DNA of 63,660 nt, the filler included, from Klebsormidium nitens (taxonomy: Eukaryota > Plantae > Klebsormidiophyceae), in NCBI GenBank assembly GCA_000708835.1. It is 8 parts of 8 records of this genome, joined end to end, with 100 filler letters (N's around TTAATTAATTAA, not from the genome) between each part and the next. Parts side by side here need not be neighbours in the genome. Positions count along the whole stretch, not along the records: positions 26,866 to 35,009 come from DF238256.1; 7 more parts are not named here. One strand, given 5' to 3'. Below the pieces are notes generated by a model, which did not search any database, was not told where the DNA came from, and saw nothing but the letters and a program-made list of their open reading frames with translations. This document shows positions 26,766-36,415 of the stretch, one piece after another (positions within the stretch are counted from its first letter, which is position 1; each line of letters starts with the position of its first letter). The translations under genes were made by a program, and so were the position numbers.

Positions 26766-27329
26766 NNNNNNNNNNNNNNNNNNNNNNNNNNNNNNNNNNN
26801 NNNNNNNNNTTAATTAATTAANNNNNNNNNNNNNNNNNNNNNNNNNNNNNNNNNNNNNNNNNNNNACCCTCCAAATGGGACATCGATTTGAGTTGAGGGG
26901 CCAGTTTTGGCTTAGGGATTTGGGCCGTAAGCTTCTTGACCCGCAATTGACGGGAAAACGACAAAATCTGTGTTGTTGAGGGGGGTCAGCCTTACTTAAG
27001 GACAACATCGAACCCAGTGTACCACCCGGTTTACCTATAGGAACATGTTTTGGGTACCGCGGTATTCAGGAACAAACCTGCTGACACCCGTTGCGCTCCC
27101 GTCGTTTTTTTGGTCAACACTTGCAATCAAGGTGCCAGATGTCCAAATTCACAAGGTATCTTTCCAGAGTTCCAGACCATTAGAGCGCATTTCGCAATTA
27201 ATCAAGCGCCAACGCAGTGAAGGGTGCTGCAAACAGGGTGGAGCAGCAAGCAAGCAAGCAAGCAAGCAGAGGGCATTGCAAACAGAGTGGAGTAAGCAGT
27301 GCAACATCAAAAAGGGGACTGCTTCTGAG

Positions 27330-28480
27330 GGGACTGCTTAGGAAGAAGCGGCAAGCTCAGCTGGGGTTTGAGGCTGCCCGCTTGTTTTTGCGCGACGCTT
27401 GGTTTCTTGGTGCACCTGGATTGAGCACATGTGGCAGAGGGGTCTTGAGGCACCACTTAAGGTACAACACCCGGCAGCACTTCAAATGGTCTGAGCTGCT
27501 GGTTGTATATATATATTTTGCTGCTTCTTTGCGGCTGGCTCTTGGCTTTGAGCAACGCTTAGTTTTTTTGTGCTCTATGAGGCACCACGTAGGAAAAATC
27601 GTTGTTTTGAAGACCTGGCTGATCAACCTACAACCTGCAGCTCAAGGCTTGAAAGCTTTTGTGCAATGCTCAGGGTTTGTTTTTCTTTCTTTCAGGTTTT
27701 TGGTTTCTCTGGCGCATACCCGCTTTTGCAGACTGGAAGAAGCGGCAGCATGTCTGGGTCTTGAGGCACTACTTAGGAAGAAGCTGTAGCACTCGAGGTT
27801 CTTGAGGCACTACTTAGGAAGAAGCTGTAGCACTCTGAGGGGGTCTGGAGGCACTACTTAGGAAGAAGTGGCAAACTCTGAGCTGTTGGTTACATAGGGT
27901 TTGTTTTTTTGGAAGTTGCGGTTTTGTAGTCCCTCGACTGCAGGGCTTTTTGAGGCATCAAAATCTTGGAACCTTTTGCTTTTGTGTGTTTCTTTACACA
28001 TGCTCGGGGTTTGCTTGTTCCTGTAGGTAGGAAGAAGCGGCCAGCACTTCCAAAGGGTCTGAGCAAGCAAAAGGTGGGGGGGGGAGTTGGTTGCATAAAA
28101 CTTCTGGCCAGGGGCTTGCTTTTTATTCAGGTTTTGGTTTCCTTGGCGCATACCCAGGGTCTGGACGGTTTAGCAGGCTGGAAGAAGCGGCAGCACCTCC
28201 GGGGTCTGAGCTGTTGGTTGCATAGGGTTTGCAGAGGGCTATTTTTGGAGGCATCAAATTCTTGGAACCTTTTGCTTTTGTGCAATGCTCGGGGTCTGGG
28301 TTGTTTTTACACATGCTCAGGGTTTGCTTCTTTTCTGTAGGTAGGCGAAGCGGCCAGCACTTCTGAGGCACCACGCGGCAGCACTTCCAAAGGGTCTGAG
28401 CAAGCAAAAGGTGAGGGAGTACTGAGCTTTTGGTTGCATACAACTTCTCGCCCAGGGGTTTGCTCTTTTGCTGCTTTGAA
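27330..28480. repeat. Degenerate tandem repeat array upstream of the KDZ transposase (possible subterminal repeats)
   Basis: Recurring GAAGAAGCGGCAGCA, GAGGCACTACTTAGGAAGAAG (3 close copies at about 27760-27870) and TCTGAGCAAGCAAAAGGTG blocks. Confidence 0.8.
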
Positions 28481-28595
28481 GCATTGACACTCAAGGTTTG
28501 TGCGACGTGCTGAGGGATGATAAGGCAAACCTGAAACAAGCTCAACCATCTGTTTCTTCACGGGTCTGAGAAGTTGCACACACTTTTGGTGCAGG

Positions 28596-31500
28596 ATGAA
28601 GGGTTGGGAGACTGGCGTAACACCCACGGCTGACAACCCTGTCGACCTCGCCTTGTTGAAGAAGGTTGACCTGTCGACCGTCGTCCAGAAGTGCCACTGC
28701 TGTGGCAACGAGCCTTGGAGACGAAAGCCGCCCCCACCTGAACCCCCCAACCCTGACCACATCCCCATAACTGTCAGCCGCACCCCTGGATCAGGCCTGT
28801 TTATCTGCATGGAGTGCACCCCACAGAATACCAGTTCTGGGCGACCCAAATGCCAACCTGGCAGCGACAAGCCCATTCCATACCGCCGCGTCTGGTGCAT
28901 CCCCTGCATTAAGAACATCGACGGAGCTTTAAAGAGCACCTTCAAGCAGGACGGCTCATGGGAGCAGATCCGGTCCAAGTGCTGGCACTGTACCTTATCC
29001 AAGGGCAACTGTCACCCCAAGTGTCCCCAGACTGTGCGCAGCAAGAAGCGGACGGCGGAAGCCCCTCCCACGGCCCCCAAGAAACAACGGACCGTGCTGC
29101 TGGCCCCTCCCCTCCCAACTTGCACACAGATCCAGCGGGACACTGACGTCCAGAAGTTGGCCACAGAGATCCTGAAACAAAACCTCTTCAGCCCCCATCC
29201 TCAAGCCTTTGTCTACTTCATCCCCGATTTCAAGTGTAAGAACGGGACGTTCAAGCTGATCGTACCCAAGGTGACTAACCCCCCAAAGTTCCCCAAACCG
29301 GTGAGCATGTGCCGCCCGAACCAAACCGACGGCGACGGGGTCCTGCGTTGCCCCACGTGTACCGGGGAATGCATCCACATCCAAGTGCTGAAGCGCGTCC
29401 TGGAGCTGACAAAAGCAGGGCGATGCACGCCCCCCACCACCCCCGAGATGCAGTTCGGCCACGCGGGACCCCTGAAGCTCTCCAACGGGCTGACGGAGTT
29501 CTGGGCCGTTGTGGCGGGGAACGAGAAGTGGGTCATGGGGGCAAAGAGAGGCGAGGGCTGGGTCTGCCAGGCGTGTCCAAGCAATCCAAAATGCGGGCAC
29601 ATCTCCAAAGTGACCGGCGAACCTGGCGAGGAGCTAAAACTCTCCAAACGCTACGATCGAGATTCGGCCATCGAGTGGCAAGACATCCCCCTAGAGACCC
29701 CAGTCCCTCCCAAGCCTGACGACTTGAACGTCGACGTGTGCGACGAGTGTCGCCAGAAGTACTCGCACACGAGGGCGATCGGGGAACACCAGTTTGACGG
29801 CTGCTCCCACAAGGGAAAGACGGTCCACGTCTGCACTCCTTCCTGTCAACAATACCCATGCTCCGAACCTCACAAGGCTACACGGGAGCCTCTGATTGGA
29901 GCGGATAACGTCGCCACCTGGCAAAGAGACAAGCTGCTGCGGAAGGCCGCGGAGGGGTATTTTAGCCAGTCACCACCGGTGTTAGAGGAAGCACCCTGTG
30001 GTTTCAACTGGCGGAGACGCACGGTCACTGCAACCATCTACAACGACACGGACTCAGTCGAGGTTGACCTCTGCGTGTGGCACTGTACGAGACTGGGTTT
30101 TAACAAGTGCTGCTCCCTCCAACCCATCCTGAAAGGGTTATACTTTCAGGCGCCCTCACCCGCTCGTTTCAGTCACCTAGTCCTCGTCCGAGCGGTGGCT
30201 GACATGGTCTACAAAGGCGCCACCTTCCAGGGGATCGAGCACGTAGCCAAGCTGGAGGCTAACTGGATGATGGGTGAGTAACTTGTGGTCCTACACTCCA
30301 TCAATGGCAAATTCCTTGTATTGAAATTGGAGTTGAATATGCACGAACTTGTTACTCGATGTGCTTTTCTGATTCTATCAATTCTCTTTGCAGGTGAGAA
30401 GCCGGGGCTGACGCGCCAAGTTCTACAGGGGTACATCCGTCATCTTCTCGCCCGCGAGCCCCGTCCCGCACTCCCCCAGCAACCTTCCTCCAACCCCTGG
30501 ACCCCTGCCATCAGAGAGCTGTTGCGAGAGCGGCCCGACCTCGCCTGCGAGCCCGCCGACCCTAAAGCTCTTGTCGGCCGGACCTTCTGGAAGCTGTTCC
30601 CGGAGGATCAGCAATGGTGGCGTGGGCGTGTCATAGGCCACATGCTGCACACCAGTGCTTTTGAGCTGTGGCCCATGTACCAGGTGGGCCATCTCAATGA
30701 GTCGGTTTGGCAAATGCTCTAGATAGAAGCAGCCATCTGTGCATGTCACCGGATAGCTAAATGCCTACGAAAGTTGCTGACACTTACTCGGTTTCATTGC
30801 AGGTGGTGTACCCTTCGACCCCGTTGAAGGAGAGCGGCAAAGAAGATCCAAACAAGCACGAGAAGATGACGTGGCGGGACCTGCAGCACCGACTGAACCC
30901 GCCCGAGGTTGGGCGCTCACTGATCTGTAACCATCATCACTCTCTTGATTGGATTATACACATGCTGTGATCGAAGTGAAGGAGGGCACCTTAACTGCTG
31001 TTTGAGCTTTTTGCACGCGCCTTACAGGTGCCGTTTGTGGGGGATGACTTTGATCGGGAGTACTGGGGGCCTCACAAACGGAGCTGGTCCCCACCAGGCT
31101 GGGAGGACGAGCCCCCCCCCGCTCCTCAGCCGCCCCAGCTCTCCACCAGCACTGCCCAGCCTTCCTCCCCCGCTCCTGAGCCACCCCAGCCCTCCACCAG
31201 CACTGCCCAGCAGCCCTGGCCGGTTTGCCCCGACTATAAGGCGTATCCAGAGGCCCTCTACATCGACTGCAGAGAGGCGCACATGCGGCACCGCTTCAAA
31301 GACCCTGTCTCAGGACAACCTGTCAACCTCTTGCCCATCACCTACCCCTTTCCCAACCGAGTTGTAACGCCAAACGTCCATCTAGAGGGGGCAAAGCTAA
31401 AGAACACCTTCAAGGGTGCTCCGAAGGTTGTGAAGCAGTCCAAAGTACGCGGTGTCTTGAAGCGGTGGAGTGGTCATGCGCCCGTCACAAAGCGGTACGT

Positions 31501-33744
31501 GGGGAGGACGGTCCAGATCATCCGCACACCCCAGCCTGCCCCTCTAGACGAGGCTGATGTGGAGGTTAGTTCTAGCCCAATTATATTGACTGACTTTGCT
31601 TTCAACGATCTGCATACCGCGTCGTTCTATGAAAGTCTGCCAATGTGCTGCAATTTCTTTCACTCCCATGGAGCTTCATCTCTAGACTGCTGCAACATAT
31701 AAAACCAACCAGGAGCACCGATACCGCGAATTGTGAGAGTTTTAACGCGGGCTCATCGTGCTTTTGTGCAGGTACTGAAGAGGCTCCCATACTGCGTCCG
31801 GGCGTTGATCGAGTATGTCCACAAACCGGGCGAGGTGCCACCCACATGCCCCAACCCTGCCTACGCGTCACTGTTCTACCACCTTGGCTACATCCACAGC
31901 GACACAAACCTCCTCGGCTACGACGCTCAGGACGTCATAGTGCGACTTCTGGTGACTCTCAAGTTATCTGGAGGCCAGAAGTCCATCGAGATCAGTGTCG
32001 AGTCTGATACAATCCTCCACGTCAACGCACCATCCCTGCGACACATCCTTATGAGCTCAATGGCTCCTAAGCAGGCGACGAAGGGTTTCGACCTGAGCGA
32101 CCCGTCCAAGAAGCGGCGAGGCACGGGATATAAAGTGTTGGTCCAGACTCTCAAAGTCCTTGCCCCGCTCCTCCAGCACCTCCTTCATCTGTCCTTTGCA
32201 AACAAGGACTACAACACCTCTTCTCAAGCGTCGGCGATGCTCTGTGAAGCTTTGGGGGTGCCGGTGGGGTATATCTGGTTGGAACCCTTCGCCGCCGGAG
32301 GCTCTGGTGAGGTTTTGGGAGGGCACCCTGTGACCGCAGACAAGGCGCTGAGTCTAATCGGGAAGATCAAGGAGCTGATGTCCGGCCCGTGCCGGGGTAC
32401 TTCAGAGGGGGTCCTAGCCGGGGAGGCCTACGTGGTGAATCAGCACAGGCTGAGCTCCAGCAATGTCTACCACCATGTGTTCCGGGACGTCCCCCAGTTC
32501 GCAGGGCTCGATGCAGCTGACGGCATGTGCCTCGGGGGTGAAAATTGGGACAAGTGCCTCACGGAGGAAGGACGTATTTGCATCCTGCAAGAACAAGGGA
32601 TGAAACTCGACGTGAGGATTCCCCAATCTACCTTTGTAGTGAGAATCTAATTCGGACCCCAAGAAGTGAGGAAGGCATGTATCTGTGTGCAATCGGCAAT
32701 CGACAGGAAGGTTGCAAGAGATTCGCAGTGTCATTCACCTCAAATTGTGTTTATCCTCCTGACGGATGCTTTGGCATCGTGCAGGAGGCCGAGGAGAAGG
32801 TGGCGATCATGTGGGAAGCAAAGAAGAAGGCAGCAAAGGCGGCTGAGGAGAAGAAGGTGATTATTACATGCACTGTATGCCAAAGGAAAGCACTATTATC
32901 AGGAAACATGAGGATGCTTCTGTCGCCTGCCTTCTGTGTGGTTGTCAGCCAGGCAGACTCATGGAACAGATCGCTTTTTACAGAAACCGCCCAAACCCGC
33001 GACGGACGAGACCGCTGGGATCATGGTCGTCACGTGCAAGCATCGCTTCGTGTACTACTATCACGTACTTCTCCGCCACGAGTCTCTACGCGACGTCTTC
33101 ACCTTCCTCGTCACTCGCTTCGAGCACCGTCCTCCACGTTTCATCATCTACGACAATGCGTGCGAGTTGTCGCGCTACTGTGAAGGGGTGAGTTTGCACT
33201 TGGTTGGCTTTTTTCGGAACAACGATACATGTTGAGCCTACATTATGCTGGTGTCTGGCAGGTTTGAGTGAGGCATGTTTCTGATTGGACATCTTGTGCA
33301 TTTGCAGCGCTGGCCGGAGTTCTTCGCCGAGACCACGTTCCTGACGGACCGCTTTCACGGAGTCAATCACCTGTGCTCCATCGAATTCAAGTACCACAAG
33401 CAACGCCTGCAGGGGCGTGAGGAATTTCCGGGGCCAGATCAAGATTCAGTGTCCGAGCTGATCAACAGGCTCATGTCGCGATTCGACAAGACGGAGCAAA
33501 GGGCGAACATCAACACGGGGATGCTGGTTTACGACTACTATATCCAGGTTCACAACACAGACCTCTTGGCGAACTGGCCAAAGATGCGGCAGTCGCAGGT
33601 ACGTCTGAACAACATGTTAGTTTTCCCACCCCCCACTGCAATTTGATATAGGGGATTGATGAACCCTTGCCCTGCCACGACATCACTTCAAACCATCATG
33701 ACGTTCTTATCGCCTTTGTGCAGGGCACCAACATCCAGGGATGA
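28596..33744 (+). mobile_element. Multi-exon KDZ (Kyakuja-Dileera-Zisupton)-type transposase with SWIM-like/CxC zinc fingers and a Tudor-like domain
   Basis: Approximate exons 28596-30273, 30394-30683, 30803-30907, 31028-~31500, ~31772-~32600, ~32787-32858, ~32957-33187, 33308-33598, 33724-33744. C-terminal core TAGIMVVTCKHRFVYYYHVLLRHESLRDVFTFLVTRF..PRFIIYDNACELSRYC / RWPEFF..FLTDRFHGVNHLC..SE; N-terminal CPTC..CIH and CQAC..CGH motifs. Confidence 0.82.
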
Positions 33745-33798
33745 CCTACGATTTCCTACATTGCGGGTGCATACCAGGTGAGATCTTTCTCTGTCCTT

Positions 33799-34257
33799 CT
33801 AAGCGGCGACAACATCGCCTGTATTCTTTCCGTACCACGTGAGAATCTCCGTGTCTCTCGCGACCGTTTTAATCAGTTCCATATAGATCCTGCACTTGTG
33901 TTGCCTCCAACGGGCGTTCTGCTGACGCTCGGTGTCTGCCGCGTTCGCGAAACGGGGGACACTGGACGTCCGCGAGTCCGCACCATCGATCACATGCACG
34001 ATTCTGCCACGTTGCTTGACATCGAACATGTATCCCTTGTCTCCTTTCTTTTCCTCAGCCTCTTTGTCTGTGAGCAGCCTGCCGACGAATTCTCCGATTA
34101 TATACCCCTTTTTCAAACGCCGGTTGCTGTAGAGCCCGCTGCCTTTCACACCTTTGCTCGCCAAGAACCTGCTCCTTTTCACCTTCACATCATGGTCAGA
34201 GTAGCGTTCCGTCACGCCGTGTCGTGTTCGATTACTTGCCTCTTCAAACTTTCCCAT
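33799..34257 (-). CDS. Stand-alone SET-domain (PR/SET-like) putative protein-lysine methyltransferase, about 152 aa; a possible acceptor at about 34279 could add an upstream exon
   Basis: GSGLYSNRRLKKGYIIGEFVG..GYMFDV..IDG..RFANAADTERQQNA..IYMELIKTVARDTEILTWYG: SET motifs I, III and IV with the terminal Tyr kept; uninterrupted ORF. Confidence 0.87.
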   Translation of the reverse strand: MGKFEEASNRTRHGVTERYSDHDVKVKRSRFLASKGVKGSGLYSNRRLKKGYIIGEFVGRLLTDKEAEEKKGDKGYMFDVKQRGRIVHVIDGADSRTSSVPRFANAADTERQQNARWRQHKCRIYMELIKTVARDTEILTWYGKNTGDVVAA

Positions 34258-36415
34258 ACAATAACATGATTTTTTCTTCCTGGAATTGCAGGTGGTGTAC
34301 AGTATCAAGTAGTATAGGAATTGGCGTGTATTGACCAATAAACAATTGACTTGCAGTGACATATGACTTGAATGCATTCAACCACAAAACCACAAAAGGC
34401 TTTGCATCCAGACATGTCAATCCAGCGCGTATCATATTTCAAGCATGCGGGAACCGTTTGCTGTATCTTGTGTTTTCCACATCATATAGACGACTGGTGA
34501 GACATGACCAGCATCATCAGTAGAATTCCTCGTTGTTCCGGCTGGGTCTTGCGATGTCATAGTGAGCATGTGATTACGGCAGTGAATGCGCATGATCTCT
34601 CTGCAATCTATGGCGCTATGAAGAGCATACACGTACTACTCGGCAGATTCCCTCAGTGTGATGAGGACTTTCAAATTGCCACAGTCGCTATTCTTAGAGG
34701 GTTCAGAGCGATCGGTAGTGCAGTCCCCGAATTTCAAGATCTCAATAACGTGTACTGTCAAACACTGTCAAACATTGTCCTCGGTCAGCTGCCAAGGTCA
34801 TGATTCGACTGGATGAACCAGCAAGCTAATTTGGAGACACCTCCACATGCGCATGTGAGAGTCCAGCAACTGATCATCGACGTCTCATTGGAAATATTCT
34901 GGTTGTGGCGTGTCGAACAGTTGCCTGACCTTGAGGACTGCTGTTTACAATTACGAGTGGCATGGCAGTTTGTGAGGGTTGGAAGCTGCTAGGCGGTTGG
35001 ATGGAGGAANNNNNNNNNNNNNNNNNNNNNNNNNNNNNNNNNNNNNNNNNNNNTTAATTAATTAANNNNNNNNNNNNNNNNNNNNNNNNNNNNNNNNNNN
35101 NNNNNNNNNCCCTGAAACGTGACATCATAATCTCGACACGTTGAAAAACCCTAAACCCTAACATGCGATTTCAAAATTTTTTGCAGATTCTGAAAGCGCG
35201 TAAAAAATGTGACACAAATCCATCACAGCAATAGCACCAATAAAAATAAATCAAATCTTGCGAGTTTTGCACCAAAAATGTGATCTTATTTCATACATGC
35301 ATGCATCAATACTAATCGTCACAATACCTTCTTCGTTTGGAGGCCTCCGTTTGGAGGCAGTGATCAAAACACGATGCATGCTACTTAATTCATAAAAAAA
35401 TGGATAGATTTAAAAGGAAAAATTGCATGGAAAATGAACATGCGAATCTAAATTTGATATCGATCGAACTTAATTTGATATCGAATTTATATCTATTTTT
35501 TTTTTGTTCATTGCATGTCCGACAATGAACCACTTTTTTAGGGTTTTAGGGATTTAGGGTTGAGACGGTCTTTGTCGGATCTTAGGGTTTTGAACACATC
35601 ATTATATTTGCGTGGAAGTACATACGCTTTGATGTACGTACAGATCATGTACCGGCCGCTACATGAAACCAAGTGATTTTTTAAATTTCTTAATTGTACT
35701 GTAATCAATGACCGTATTCTAACCACATTATCTTCGGGTCAAAGGAGCCAGGCTGAAGCAGTAGGAGGGTAGGTCTATCATTTGACCGGAGATCGTCGGA
35801 ACAATTGACCGGAGGAGTCGGGAGAGTTCTGTCGATCGTCCGGACGGAAGTTTAATTACTGAGTCAGAATCTAAAAGCGGCGAAATTGTTCGTAATATCT
35901 TCGGCGAGTCTGCGACGGAAAATCATAGGCAGAAAAATAACAATACTTTGTCAATTTTTTGCGGGCAATAAGATAAATGGAACACCTAACCCTTCCGGTC
36001 TTGACCAGAGGGTAATCAGGGCTGCCTGAGGCCGGGAGGCTTAGATGTTCAAGTTCCATCGATCTTATTGCCCTCAAAAAAATGACCAAGTATTGTTATT
36101 TTTCCGGCTGTTATTTTTCGCCGCAGACTCGCCGAAGATAACGAGCAATCTCGTCGGTTTTAAATTTCGATTCAGTAATTCAACTTCCGACCGGACGCGC
36201 AACAGACCGGAGATTGACCGGAGGTTGACCGGTCGAATGACAGACGGACCCTCCAATCGTCCGGAGGGCCCCAACCTCATATAACTGGCATGTGTAAGAC
36301 AGGCTTCGATCCCGCGACGTGGCACAAAAATCATATCGAACATTCAGAATATCTATATGGATCTGCAAAGATATATGCTTGGCAATGAAAAGCAGCAGTG
36401 TACGCTTCTGTAGTA

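Follow-up and report, generated by a model that had tools for sequence, protein, structure and literature searches.

A KDZ-like Transposase Gene Convergent to a SET-domain Gene in Klebsormidium nitens, and the Recurrence of This Pairing in Related Lineages

Convergent Transposase and SET Genes at the Locus

The stretch of DNA analyzed here (the window, 63,660 nucleotides (nt) joined from eight parts of the Klebsormidium nitens assembly GCA_000708835.1) contains, in the 8.1-kb piece that comes from DF238256.1 (positions 26,866 to 35,009), two genes that face each other tail-to-tail. A transposase gene that we call KDZ-like, after the Kyakuja/Dileera/Zisupton (KDZ) transposons, lies on the + strand (28596-33744), and an intronless gene for a predicted SET/PR-domain lysine methyltransferase lies on the - strand (33799-34257, stop codon 33799-33801). 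The spacer between their stop codons measures 54 nt (33745-33798), so that the 3′ untranslated regions of the two genes must overlap; nearly abutting, convergent 3′ ends of this kind would imply overlapping transcripts and coupled expression. An earlier note on this DNA had proposed a KDZ-type DNA transposon paired with its own SET gene, with the transposase ending at 33744, a single-exon SET open reading frame (ORF) ending on the opposite strand at 33799, about 55 bp between the 3′ ends, and no obvious inactivating lesion in either gene. These structural points were all borne out, as neither gene shows a lesion, with the caveat of a weak transposase intron 4 that contains an in-frame TAA.

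The transposase model was obtained by enumerating frame-keeping GT-AG introns and comparing each junction with homologous loci. It comprises nine exons (28596-30273, 30394-30683, 30803-30907, 31028-~31634, ~31716-32638, 32785-32856, 32984-33187, 33308-33598, and 33724-33744) and eight GT-AG introns, giving a coding sequence of 4,191-4,194 nt, or 1,396-1,397 amino acids (aa), with zero internal stops and a stop codon at 33742-33744. Exon 1 encodes a fast-evolving N-terminal region that is rich in Cys (33 of its 560 aa), exon 7 the best-conserved part of the protein, its core (GIMVVTCKH...PPRFIIYDNACEL), and exon 8 a motif, F-L-T-D-x-F-H-x-x-x-H-x-C, that is kept in all lineages of the family, including a K. 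nitens homologue. The last intron (33599-33723, 125 nt; CAG/GTACGT...TTTGTGCAG/G, with slashes at the splice sites) and the 7-codon terminal exon that follows are supported by the homologous locus L007, in which a perfect donor occurs at the corresponding codon, together with a mini-exon that is similar (GTNIQG* versus GATIGP...). Five of the eight introns measure 119-127 nt and have good GTGAGT/GTACGT...TTGCAG signals, and at least two of the eight, introns 7 and 8, are at positions conserved in other lineages. The signals of intron 4 (~31635-31712/15) are poor, and the TAA at 31700-31702 would truncate the transposase if this intron were left unspliced. A ratio of nonsynonymous to synonymous substitution rates (dN/dS) of 0.21 between the window and locus L004 indicates that the transposase is under purifying selection.

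The introns of 119-127 nt among those between 30274 and 33723 form an unusually uniform size class, including lengths of 120, 119, 120, 127, 120, and 125 nt. Exon 4 contains a tandem 51-nt duplication (31113-31211) encoding a Pro/Ser/Thr-rich repeat, PPQ(L/P)STSTAQ, and an unrelated PQS-repeat occupies the equivalent place in locus L008.

The SET reading frame is open from 34377 to 33799 (-), and all homologues begin at a Met equivalent to 34257, which gives 152 aa here and 152-154 aa in all the homologues found. Two Pfam profiles match it above threshold, PF21549 PRDM2_PR (59.7 bits, 3e-16, cut-off 27) and PF00856 SET (42.4 bits, 1e-10, cut-off 22.4). In a sequence search of the PDB, its best solved relatives are the PR domains of PRDM1, 5, 14, 12, and 9 (24-30% identity), with no vSET chain among the matches at E<=0.01. 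Foldseek searches with a low-confidence AlphaFold2 (AF2) model (predicted local distance difference test, pLDDT, 59) returned PRDM5 (E 8e-8), PRDM1, LegAS4, and PRDM9 in the PDB, as well as SET proteins of giant viruses in BFVD. An alignment of six homologues has 68 invariant columns, including G39 and G41 of the GxG motif, N105, and Y142 of EILTWYG; where the canonical NH motif has His, there is Ala, as is common in PR domains. The dN/dS of the gene is 0.15-0.25 between the lineages called A and B below and 0.08 between C and F, and its sequence thus indicates a real, intact gene under purifying selection. Because this selection is strong and the GxG, N105, and the EILTWYG Tyr are invariant, the gene probably encodes an active lysine methyltransferase of PR type. 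The gene is also intact in locus L003, where the adjoining transposase tail carries two nonsense codons.

A Rare Family of Transposases with a KDZ-like Core

Exon 7 is the sole stretch of the window transposase that matches the Pfam KDZ profile (PF18758, 217 positions, gathering cut-off 26.6 bits), with 22.1 bits (E 1.4e-4); an exon of L005 reaches 24.1 bits (E 3.4e-5) and the protein P0007 15.4 bits (E 0.016). All three sub-threshold matches cover profile positions 64-137 and have no competing family; the queries were single exons, and the domain is split by intron 7. The exons of the other lineages do not match this profile, nor does exon 8 alone. The exon 8 motif, which we take to resemble the FH..GH..C motif of fungal KDZ proteins, is a lead rather than a test. 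Exon 1 has zero family matches in Pfam, even at E<=1, and the KDZ-associated CxC domain was not found in it. Given such sub-threshold matches, the gene is filed as KDZ-like, with a core that appears distantly related to KDZ transposases. The KDZ-type identity put forward in the earlier note has in its favor that exon 7 matches the KDZ profile and no other, and against it the score (22-24 bits against 26.6) and the CxC domain that was not found.

A possible Tudor-like reader module is encoded in exons 2-3 (30552-30907, +; LVGRTFWKLF..WWRGRV..MYQ/VVYP...), where it is split by intron 2 (30684-30802). The best, though weak, PDB match of a profile of these exons is the Tudor domain of Arabidopsis PDS5C (7DE9, E 0.036), which reads H3K4me1, and the K. 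nitens homologue has a precomputed “faint” Pfam flag for PTM_DIR17_Tudor; the two half-domains have no match in Pfam.

The family is rare, since a HMMER search of 1.84 billion representative sequences with exon 5 recovered 14 proteins only; a search of a large protein database with exon 1 gave two relatives. The contigs of the proteins were sorted into about ten lineages, with the window as lineage A, L001/L002/L003 as B, L007 as C, L005/L006 as D, L004 as E, L008 as F, L013 as G, L014 as H, L015 as I, L017 as J, and L016 as an unnamed lineage. Homology to the transposase was traced exon by exon with tblastn in L003, L004, L005, L008, and L013-L018.

At least ten KDZ-like lineages are found on contigs with unrelated flanks, and nonsense-mutated, rearranged, and truncated copies are among them; to judge from these sequences, the family is multi-copy, and its diverged, partly decayed copies occupy unrelated sites. 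In L003, the transposase tail (644-944, -) contains two nonsense codons that are not in the 94%-identical tail of L001 (10473-10772, -). In L015 (10001-15887), the second half of exon 5 is inverted, and the copy lies ~7 kb from a long terminal repeat (LTR) retroelement (reverse transcriptase, integrase, PHD) on an 89-kb contig. In L013 (10886-12871, +), a 661-aa ORF consists of a KDZ-like core fragment followed by an ABC1 atypical-kinase domain (5.5e-49), so that a truncated copy abuts or is fused to a kinase gene; its 116-kb contig also contains giant-virus capsid P8 and DUF5767 genes. The contig of L014 has a D5_N fragment and an NB-ARC/TPR gene.

The host of these contigs is probably a Klebsormidium-like streptophyte alga, because a 583-aa ORF that adjoins several of the KDZ-like genes is 71-73% identical to two K. 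nitens proteins, both annotated as hypothetical, and because, on K. nitens scaffold DF237299.1 (locus L018), this same ORF lies convergent to a distantly related KDZ-like gene. In appearance, the contigs resemble nuclear DNA of an alga through which decayed giant-virus DNA is scattered. Alignments of the KDZ core and of SET found zero relatives among metagenome contigs, in a collection evidently without relevant samples. Among 2.9 million viral contigs, KDZ alignments found no KDZ-like gene, and single-protein searches with two ORFs from the flank of L001 gave no match.

Recurrence of the Convergent Pairing

Searches with the SET protein recovered four protein clusters on about seven contigs, and no match in the annotated K. 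nitens proteome. In all SET homologues with a readable flank, which come from four diverged lineages, a KDZ-like gene faces SET convergently. A full KDZ-like gene faces SET in L003, with the stops 13 nt apart (the spacing of L001/L003), and a transposase tail does so in L001/L002; the two coding sequences overlap by 20 nt in L007 and are at most 44 nt apart in L008. Within clade 2 of the transposase tree, the lineages that bear SET (B, F, and A) are spread over the whole depth, from the base to the tip. This recurrence of one convergent arrangement in four deeply diverged lineages argues that the pairing is beyond chance and that the SET and KDZ-like genes are truly linked.

Counted from the transposase side, SET is present in four of the nine KDZ-like lineages with a readable downstream flank, the five loci without it being L005/L006, L013 (truncated), L014, L015 (rearranged), and L018 of K. 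nitens. The expectation that SET would always sit convergent to KDZ in other copies thus holds for all readable SET loci and fails for these five KDZ-like ones. The opposite expectation, of a single-copy host SET gene, is contradicted by its recurrence beside KDZ-like genes in the four lineages.

A SET Module with a History of Its Own

Between lineages A and B, the SET gene is part of a 1,067-bp module that is ~88% identical overall and 84-94% along its length, with 92-96% nucleotide identity over the SET coding sequence and 84% over the 608 non-coding bp upstream of it (34258-34865, compared with L001/L002). The edges of this identity are the SET stop codon (33799), exactly, and ~34865; beyond them it is at random level. 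The neutral divergence of the module (dS) is about 0.2-0.3; the adjoining transposases share 28-61% of their residues and are far apart on their tree. The SET tree groups A with B (92/99 support) and the transposase-tail tree groups A with C (80/89). This conflict, together with the sharp edges of the A/B identity, indicates a recent exchange of the 1.07-kb SET module, through recombination or gene conversion, between transposase lineages of ancient divergence.

The GC content is 0.44-0.48 in the SET upstream region (34066-34865) and 0.52-0.62 in the transposase gene, and this lower value is consistent with a different origin of the module.

Two further candidates in this region were rejected. 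A + strand ORF (34504-34803) could have been a third gene, head-to-head with SET, and 63% of its residues are kept at ~84% nucleotide identity, but all six frames are equally conserved and the ORF has no Pfam match. The module as an independently inserted mini-element was likewise set aside, its flanks being devoid of a target-site duplication (TSD) or known terminal motif. No Rfam or tRNA feature was found in the 8.1-kb piece.

A Giant-virus-type Poly(A) Polymerase beside KDZ-like Genes

The intronless 583-aa ORF mentioned above (L005:7911-9662, -) recurs in L007 (2-319), L008 (3527-3676), and L018 (5482-7909, on K. nitens DF237299.1). In L007 and L008, where it shares the strand of SET, it ends ~20 bp upstream of that gene; in L005 and K. 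nitens L018, no SET intervenes, and the ORF itself faces the KDZ-like gene convergently. It thereby lies beside the KDZ-like gene, or just beyond the SET gene that faces it, in three lineages and in K. nitens, across the deepest split of the transposase tree. With its AF2 model (pLDDT 88.5), the top four PDB matches in Foldseek are polyadenylate synthases of Megavirus and Mimivirus (E 2e-6 to 1.5e-5, probability 1.0), at a template-modeling (TM) score of only 0.2-0.25. The residues of its GG...DxD nucleotidyltransferase motif (G319, G320, D321, D335, and D337) are invariant in 17 sequences. By its predicted fold, a tandem nucleotidyltransferase fold resembling 4P37/4WSE, the ORF is a polyadenylate synthase of giant-virus type (the type of Mimivirus R341).

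Relatives of this protein at 28-31% identity are present on giant-virus contigs of 154 and 221 kb in IMG/VR. The sole relative of SET outside the family, full-length and 36-40% identical, is on the contig of a giant-virus metagenome-assembled genome (MAG). Both genes are intronless, in contrast to the 8-intron transposase gene, and both look giant-virus derived.

Upstream Repeats and the Search for Termini

A direct-repeat array (27300-28560, +), lineage-specific and with a strong G>C skew, lies just upstream of the transposase start and contains 41-nt tandem units at 27735-27873 as well as dispersed units (~330-440 bp). Comparable but sequence-unrelated arrays precede the homologous genes of L005, L003, and L015 and count among the signs of a transposon-like family; the repeats may be subterminal or promoter repeats. 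Inverted copies of their motifs were not found downstream in the piece.

Terminal inverted repeats (TIRs), CA..TG termini, and TSDs were not found within the 8.1-kb piece, which may not reach either end of an element, and a search for inverted repeats between the 34865 boundary and the left flank, or in L003 against the L001 boundary, gave chance-level matches only. Kyakuja elements are without TIRs, end in CA..TG, and have 7-bp TSDs (PMC12730594); since they lack TIRs, the same finding here is not decisive.

A Composite Element and Its Alternatives

We read the window as a copy of a composite KDZ-like element with an accessory cassette from giant-virus genes, and hold this reading to be about as likely as not. 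The family would consist of rare, multi-copy, large DNA-transposon-like elements of Klebsormidium-like streptophyte algae, whose transposase of ~1,400 aa would have an N-terminus rich in Cys, a module that is possibly Tudor-like, and a catalytic core distantly related to KDZ. An intronless cassette convergent to the transposase would hold SET, the Mimivirus-type poly(A) polymerase, or both (SET only in the window), and the SET module is exchanged between transposase lineages as a 1.07-kb block. The recurrent linkage suggests that SET is carried inside the element. Its role could be analogous to that of SET in HarbingerS and of TET/JBP in the KDZ elements of fungi. As an S-adenosylmethionine (SAM)-dependent histone/protein lysine methyltransferase, it would condition the chromatin of the element or of its targets, and the overlapping convergent 3′ ends could couple the expression of both genes.

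A bolder version, which we hold to be rather doubtful, is that the transposon uses a captured giant-virus SET writer and poly(A) polymerase as a chromatin and expression toolkit, that its Tudor-like module reads the mark made by SET to choose or protect insertion sites, and that the cassette is shuffled between lineages and possibly also between the alga and giant viruses. The pairing of SET and the Tudor-like module as writer and reader is speculative.

Several observations weigh against the composite element. The KDZ assignment is sub-threshold and the CxC domain was not found; five KDZ-like loci are without SET; termini and TSDs were not located in the piece; and no near-identical copies with different flanks, by which to place the boundaries of the element, were retrieved. 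The apparent giant-virus derivation of SET and poly(A) polymerase, the capsid P8 and D5 fragments at the KDZ-like loci L013 and L014, and the report of Phycodnaviridae-like and nucleocytoplasmic large DNA virus (NCLDV) core genes in Klebsormidium (PMC5294986) point in the same direction. Of what the earlier note proposed, the transposon nature of the locus is thus supported by a multi-copy transposase family with decayed copies and not by TIRs or TSDs, and SET as the element's own cargo by linkage in four lineages and not by defined ends, by constant presence, or by a history shared with the adjoining transposase.

The strongest alternative, which we consider a serious possibility although an unlikely one, is that the locus is endogenous giant-virus DNA, or a virus genome, in which SET and poly(A) polymerase belong to the virus as resident genes, the KDZ-like gene entered an ancestral virus once, and the recurrent pairing is synteny conserved among several related viral integrations in the algal genome. 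The Megavirus/Mimivirus matches and IMG/VR relatives of the poly(A) polymerase, the full-length MAG relative of SET, the virus-like order of poly(A) polymerase then SET at ~20-bp spacing, the contigs on which KDZ-like copies accompany capsid P8, DUF5767, and D5_N, and the NCLDV core genes reported in Klebsormidium are all as it would have them. It accounts less well for a KDZ-like gene with eight spliceosomal introns, at least two of them at conserved positions, beside neighbors that have none; nor does it fit with the failure to find this gene in 2.9 million viral contigs, with the copies that adjoin an LTR retroelement and NLR-like genes (those of the nucleotide-binding leucine-rich-repeat type), or with the incongruence between the A/B SET module and its transposase. 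It is further at odds with the poly(A) polymerase being ~70% identical between L005 and K. nitens while the adjoining KDZ-like genes are ~27-36% identical and belong to different deep clades.

Alternatively, a domesticated, immobile KDZ-like gene and a host SET gene could form a host gene cluster kept for co-regulation, with copies made by segmental duplication and gene conversion. Purifying selection on both genes and the search for termini that found none would fit, and the sharp-edged 1.07-kb identity block is as expected from ectopic gene conversion; we nonetheless judge this quite improbable, as many diverged copies, some nonsense-mutated, truncated, or rearranged, are present in one sample, their flanks are unrelated, and the annotated K. 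nitens proteome gave no SET match. Finally, a chance adjacency of SET to a transposon insertion, for which speaks the single copy visible in the window, is extremely unlikely and effectively refuted, given that the convergent arrangement is common to four independent, deeply diverged lineages, with distances that range from a 20-nt overlap to 55 nt, and that a SET copy without a KDZ-like neighbor was not found among readable loci.

Relation to Known Systems

Few DNA transposons have accessory genes, and those that are known generally edit marks on chromatin or DNA (TET/JBP, VANDAL anti-silencers, and SET in HarbingerS and Plavaka). Iyer and colleagues are said to have described, in 2014, fungal KDZ transposons with TET/JBP genes. 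In fungi, KDZ transposons carry TET/JBP dioxygenase genes as cargo that passes passively between transposon lineages (Kojima, 2025, PMC12730594). They resemble the elements described here in having a large transposase beside a separate chromatin- or DNA-modifying accessory gene and in the decoupling of the cargo phylogeny from that of the transposase. They differ in that their cargo is a DNA dioxygenase, as opposed to a putative protein lysine methyltransferase, and their hosts are fungi, as opposed to a streptophyte alga; in the present family, moreover, the Pfam KDZ match is sub-threshold, CxC was not found, and termini and TSDs were not located.

SET as a transposon cargo is already known, which argues against novelty in this respect. 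HarbingerS DNA transposons carry a SET accessory gene, according to the citing text (Kojima and Jurka, 2014, as cited in PMC12730594), and other cases are Helitrons with a captured SET (PMC12730594; bioRxiv 10.1101/2025.02.11.637652) and Plavaka PAG2, with a DNA methylase and SET, in the red alga Bostrychia (bioRxiv 10.1101/2025.02.11.637652). A full-text search of the literature for KDZ together with “SET domain” yielded a single paper, the one in which HarbingerS is cited. All three are DNA transposons with a SET accessory gene, as the present family would be, and one of them is in an alga. They are, however, of the PHIS, Helitron, or CMC type and not KDZ-like, and what distinguishes the present SET is its minimal, 152-aa PR-type form, its convergent orientation, and its occasional company of a giant-virus poly(A) polymerase. 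What is unusual here, in addition, is that the cassette has affinities to giant viruses and that the module was swapped.

The SET protein is small, single-domain, and intronless, as are those of giant viruses (chlorovirus vSET, Imitervirales, Medusavirus), but it is encoded beside an intron-rich transposase gene in what appears to be algal nuclear DNA, and by sequence it is closer to the PR type (PRDM) than to any solved vSET. With animal PRDM1, 5, 9, 12, and 14 it has in common an N-x-A-x-x-x-x-x-Q-N stretch and the C-terminal motif E-(I/L)-L-x-W-Y-G; these proteins have zinc fingers or other domains that are not in the window SET, and their identity to it is 24-30%. Many PRDMs are inactive. 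The primate SET-mariner protein SETMAR also ties a SET methyltransferase to a DNA transposase, but is a single fused, domesticated host protein, in contrast to two separate convergent genes in a multi-copy family.

If the composite element is real, the cargo-bearing transposons would be joined by a KDZ-like family from the lineage of streptophytes that is closest to the ancestors of land plants, a histone-writer cassette would be moving between transposon lineages, and transposon cargo would be tied to endogenous giant-virus genes, offering a system for the trade in chromatin tools between mobile elements and viruses. Were the viral explanation true instead, the finding would be a conserved viral gene neighborhood with a resident transposase, of modest interest.

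Other Genes at Family Loci

An intronless 82-aa ORF with a histone fold (L003:8312-8560, +; Pfam Histone, 2.9e-17) lies ~3 kb upstream of the lineage-B transposase gene.

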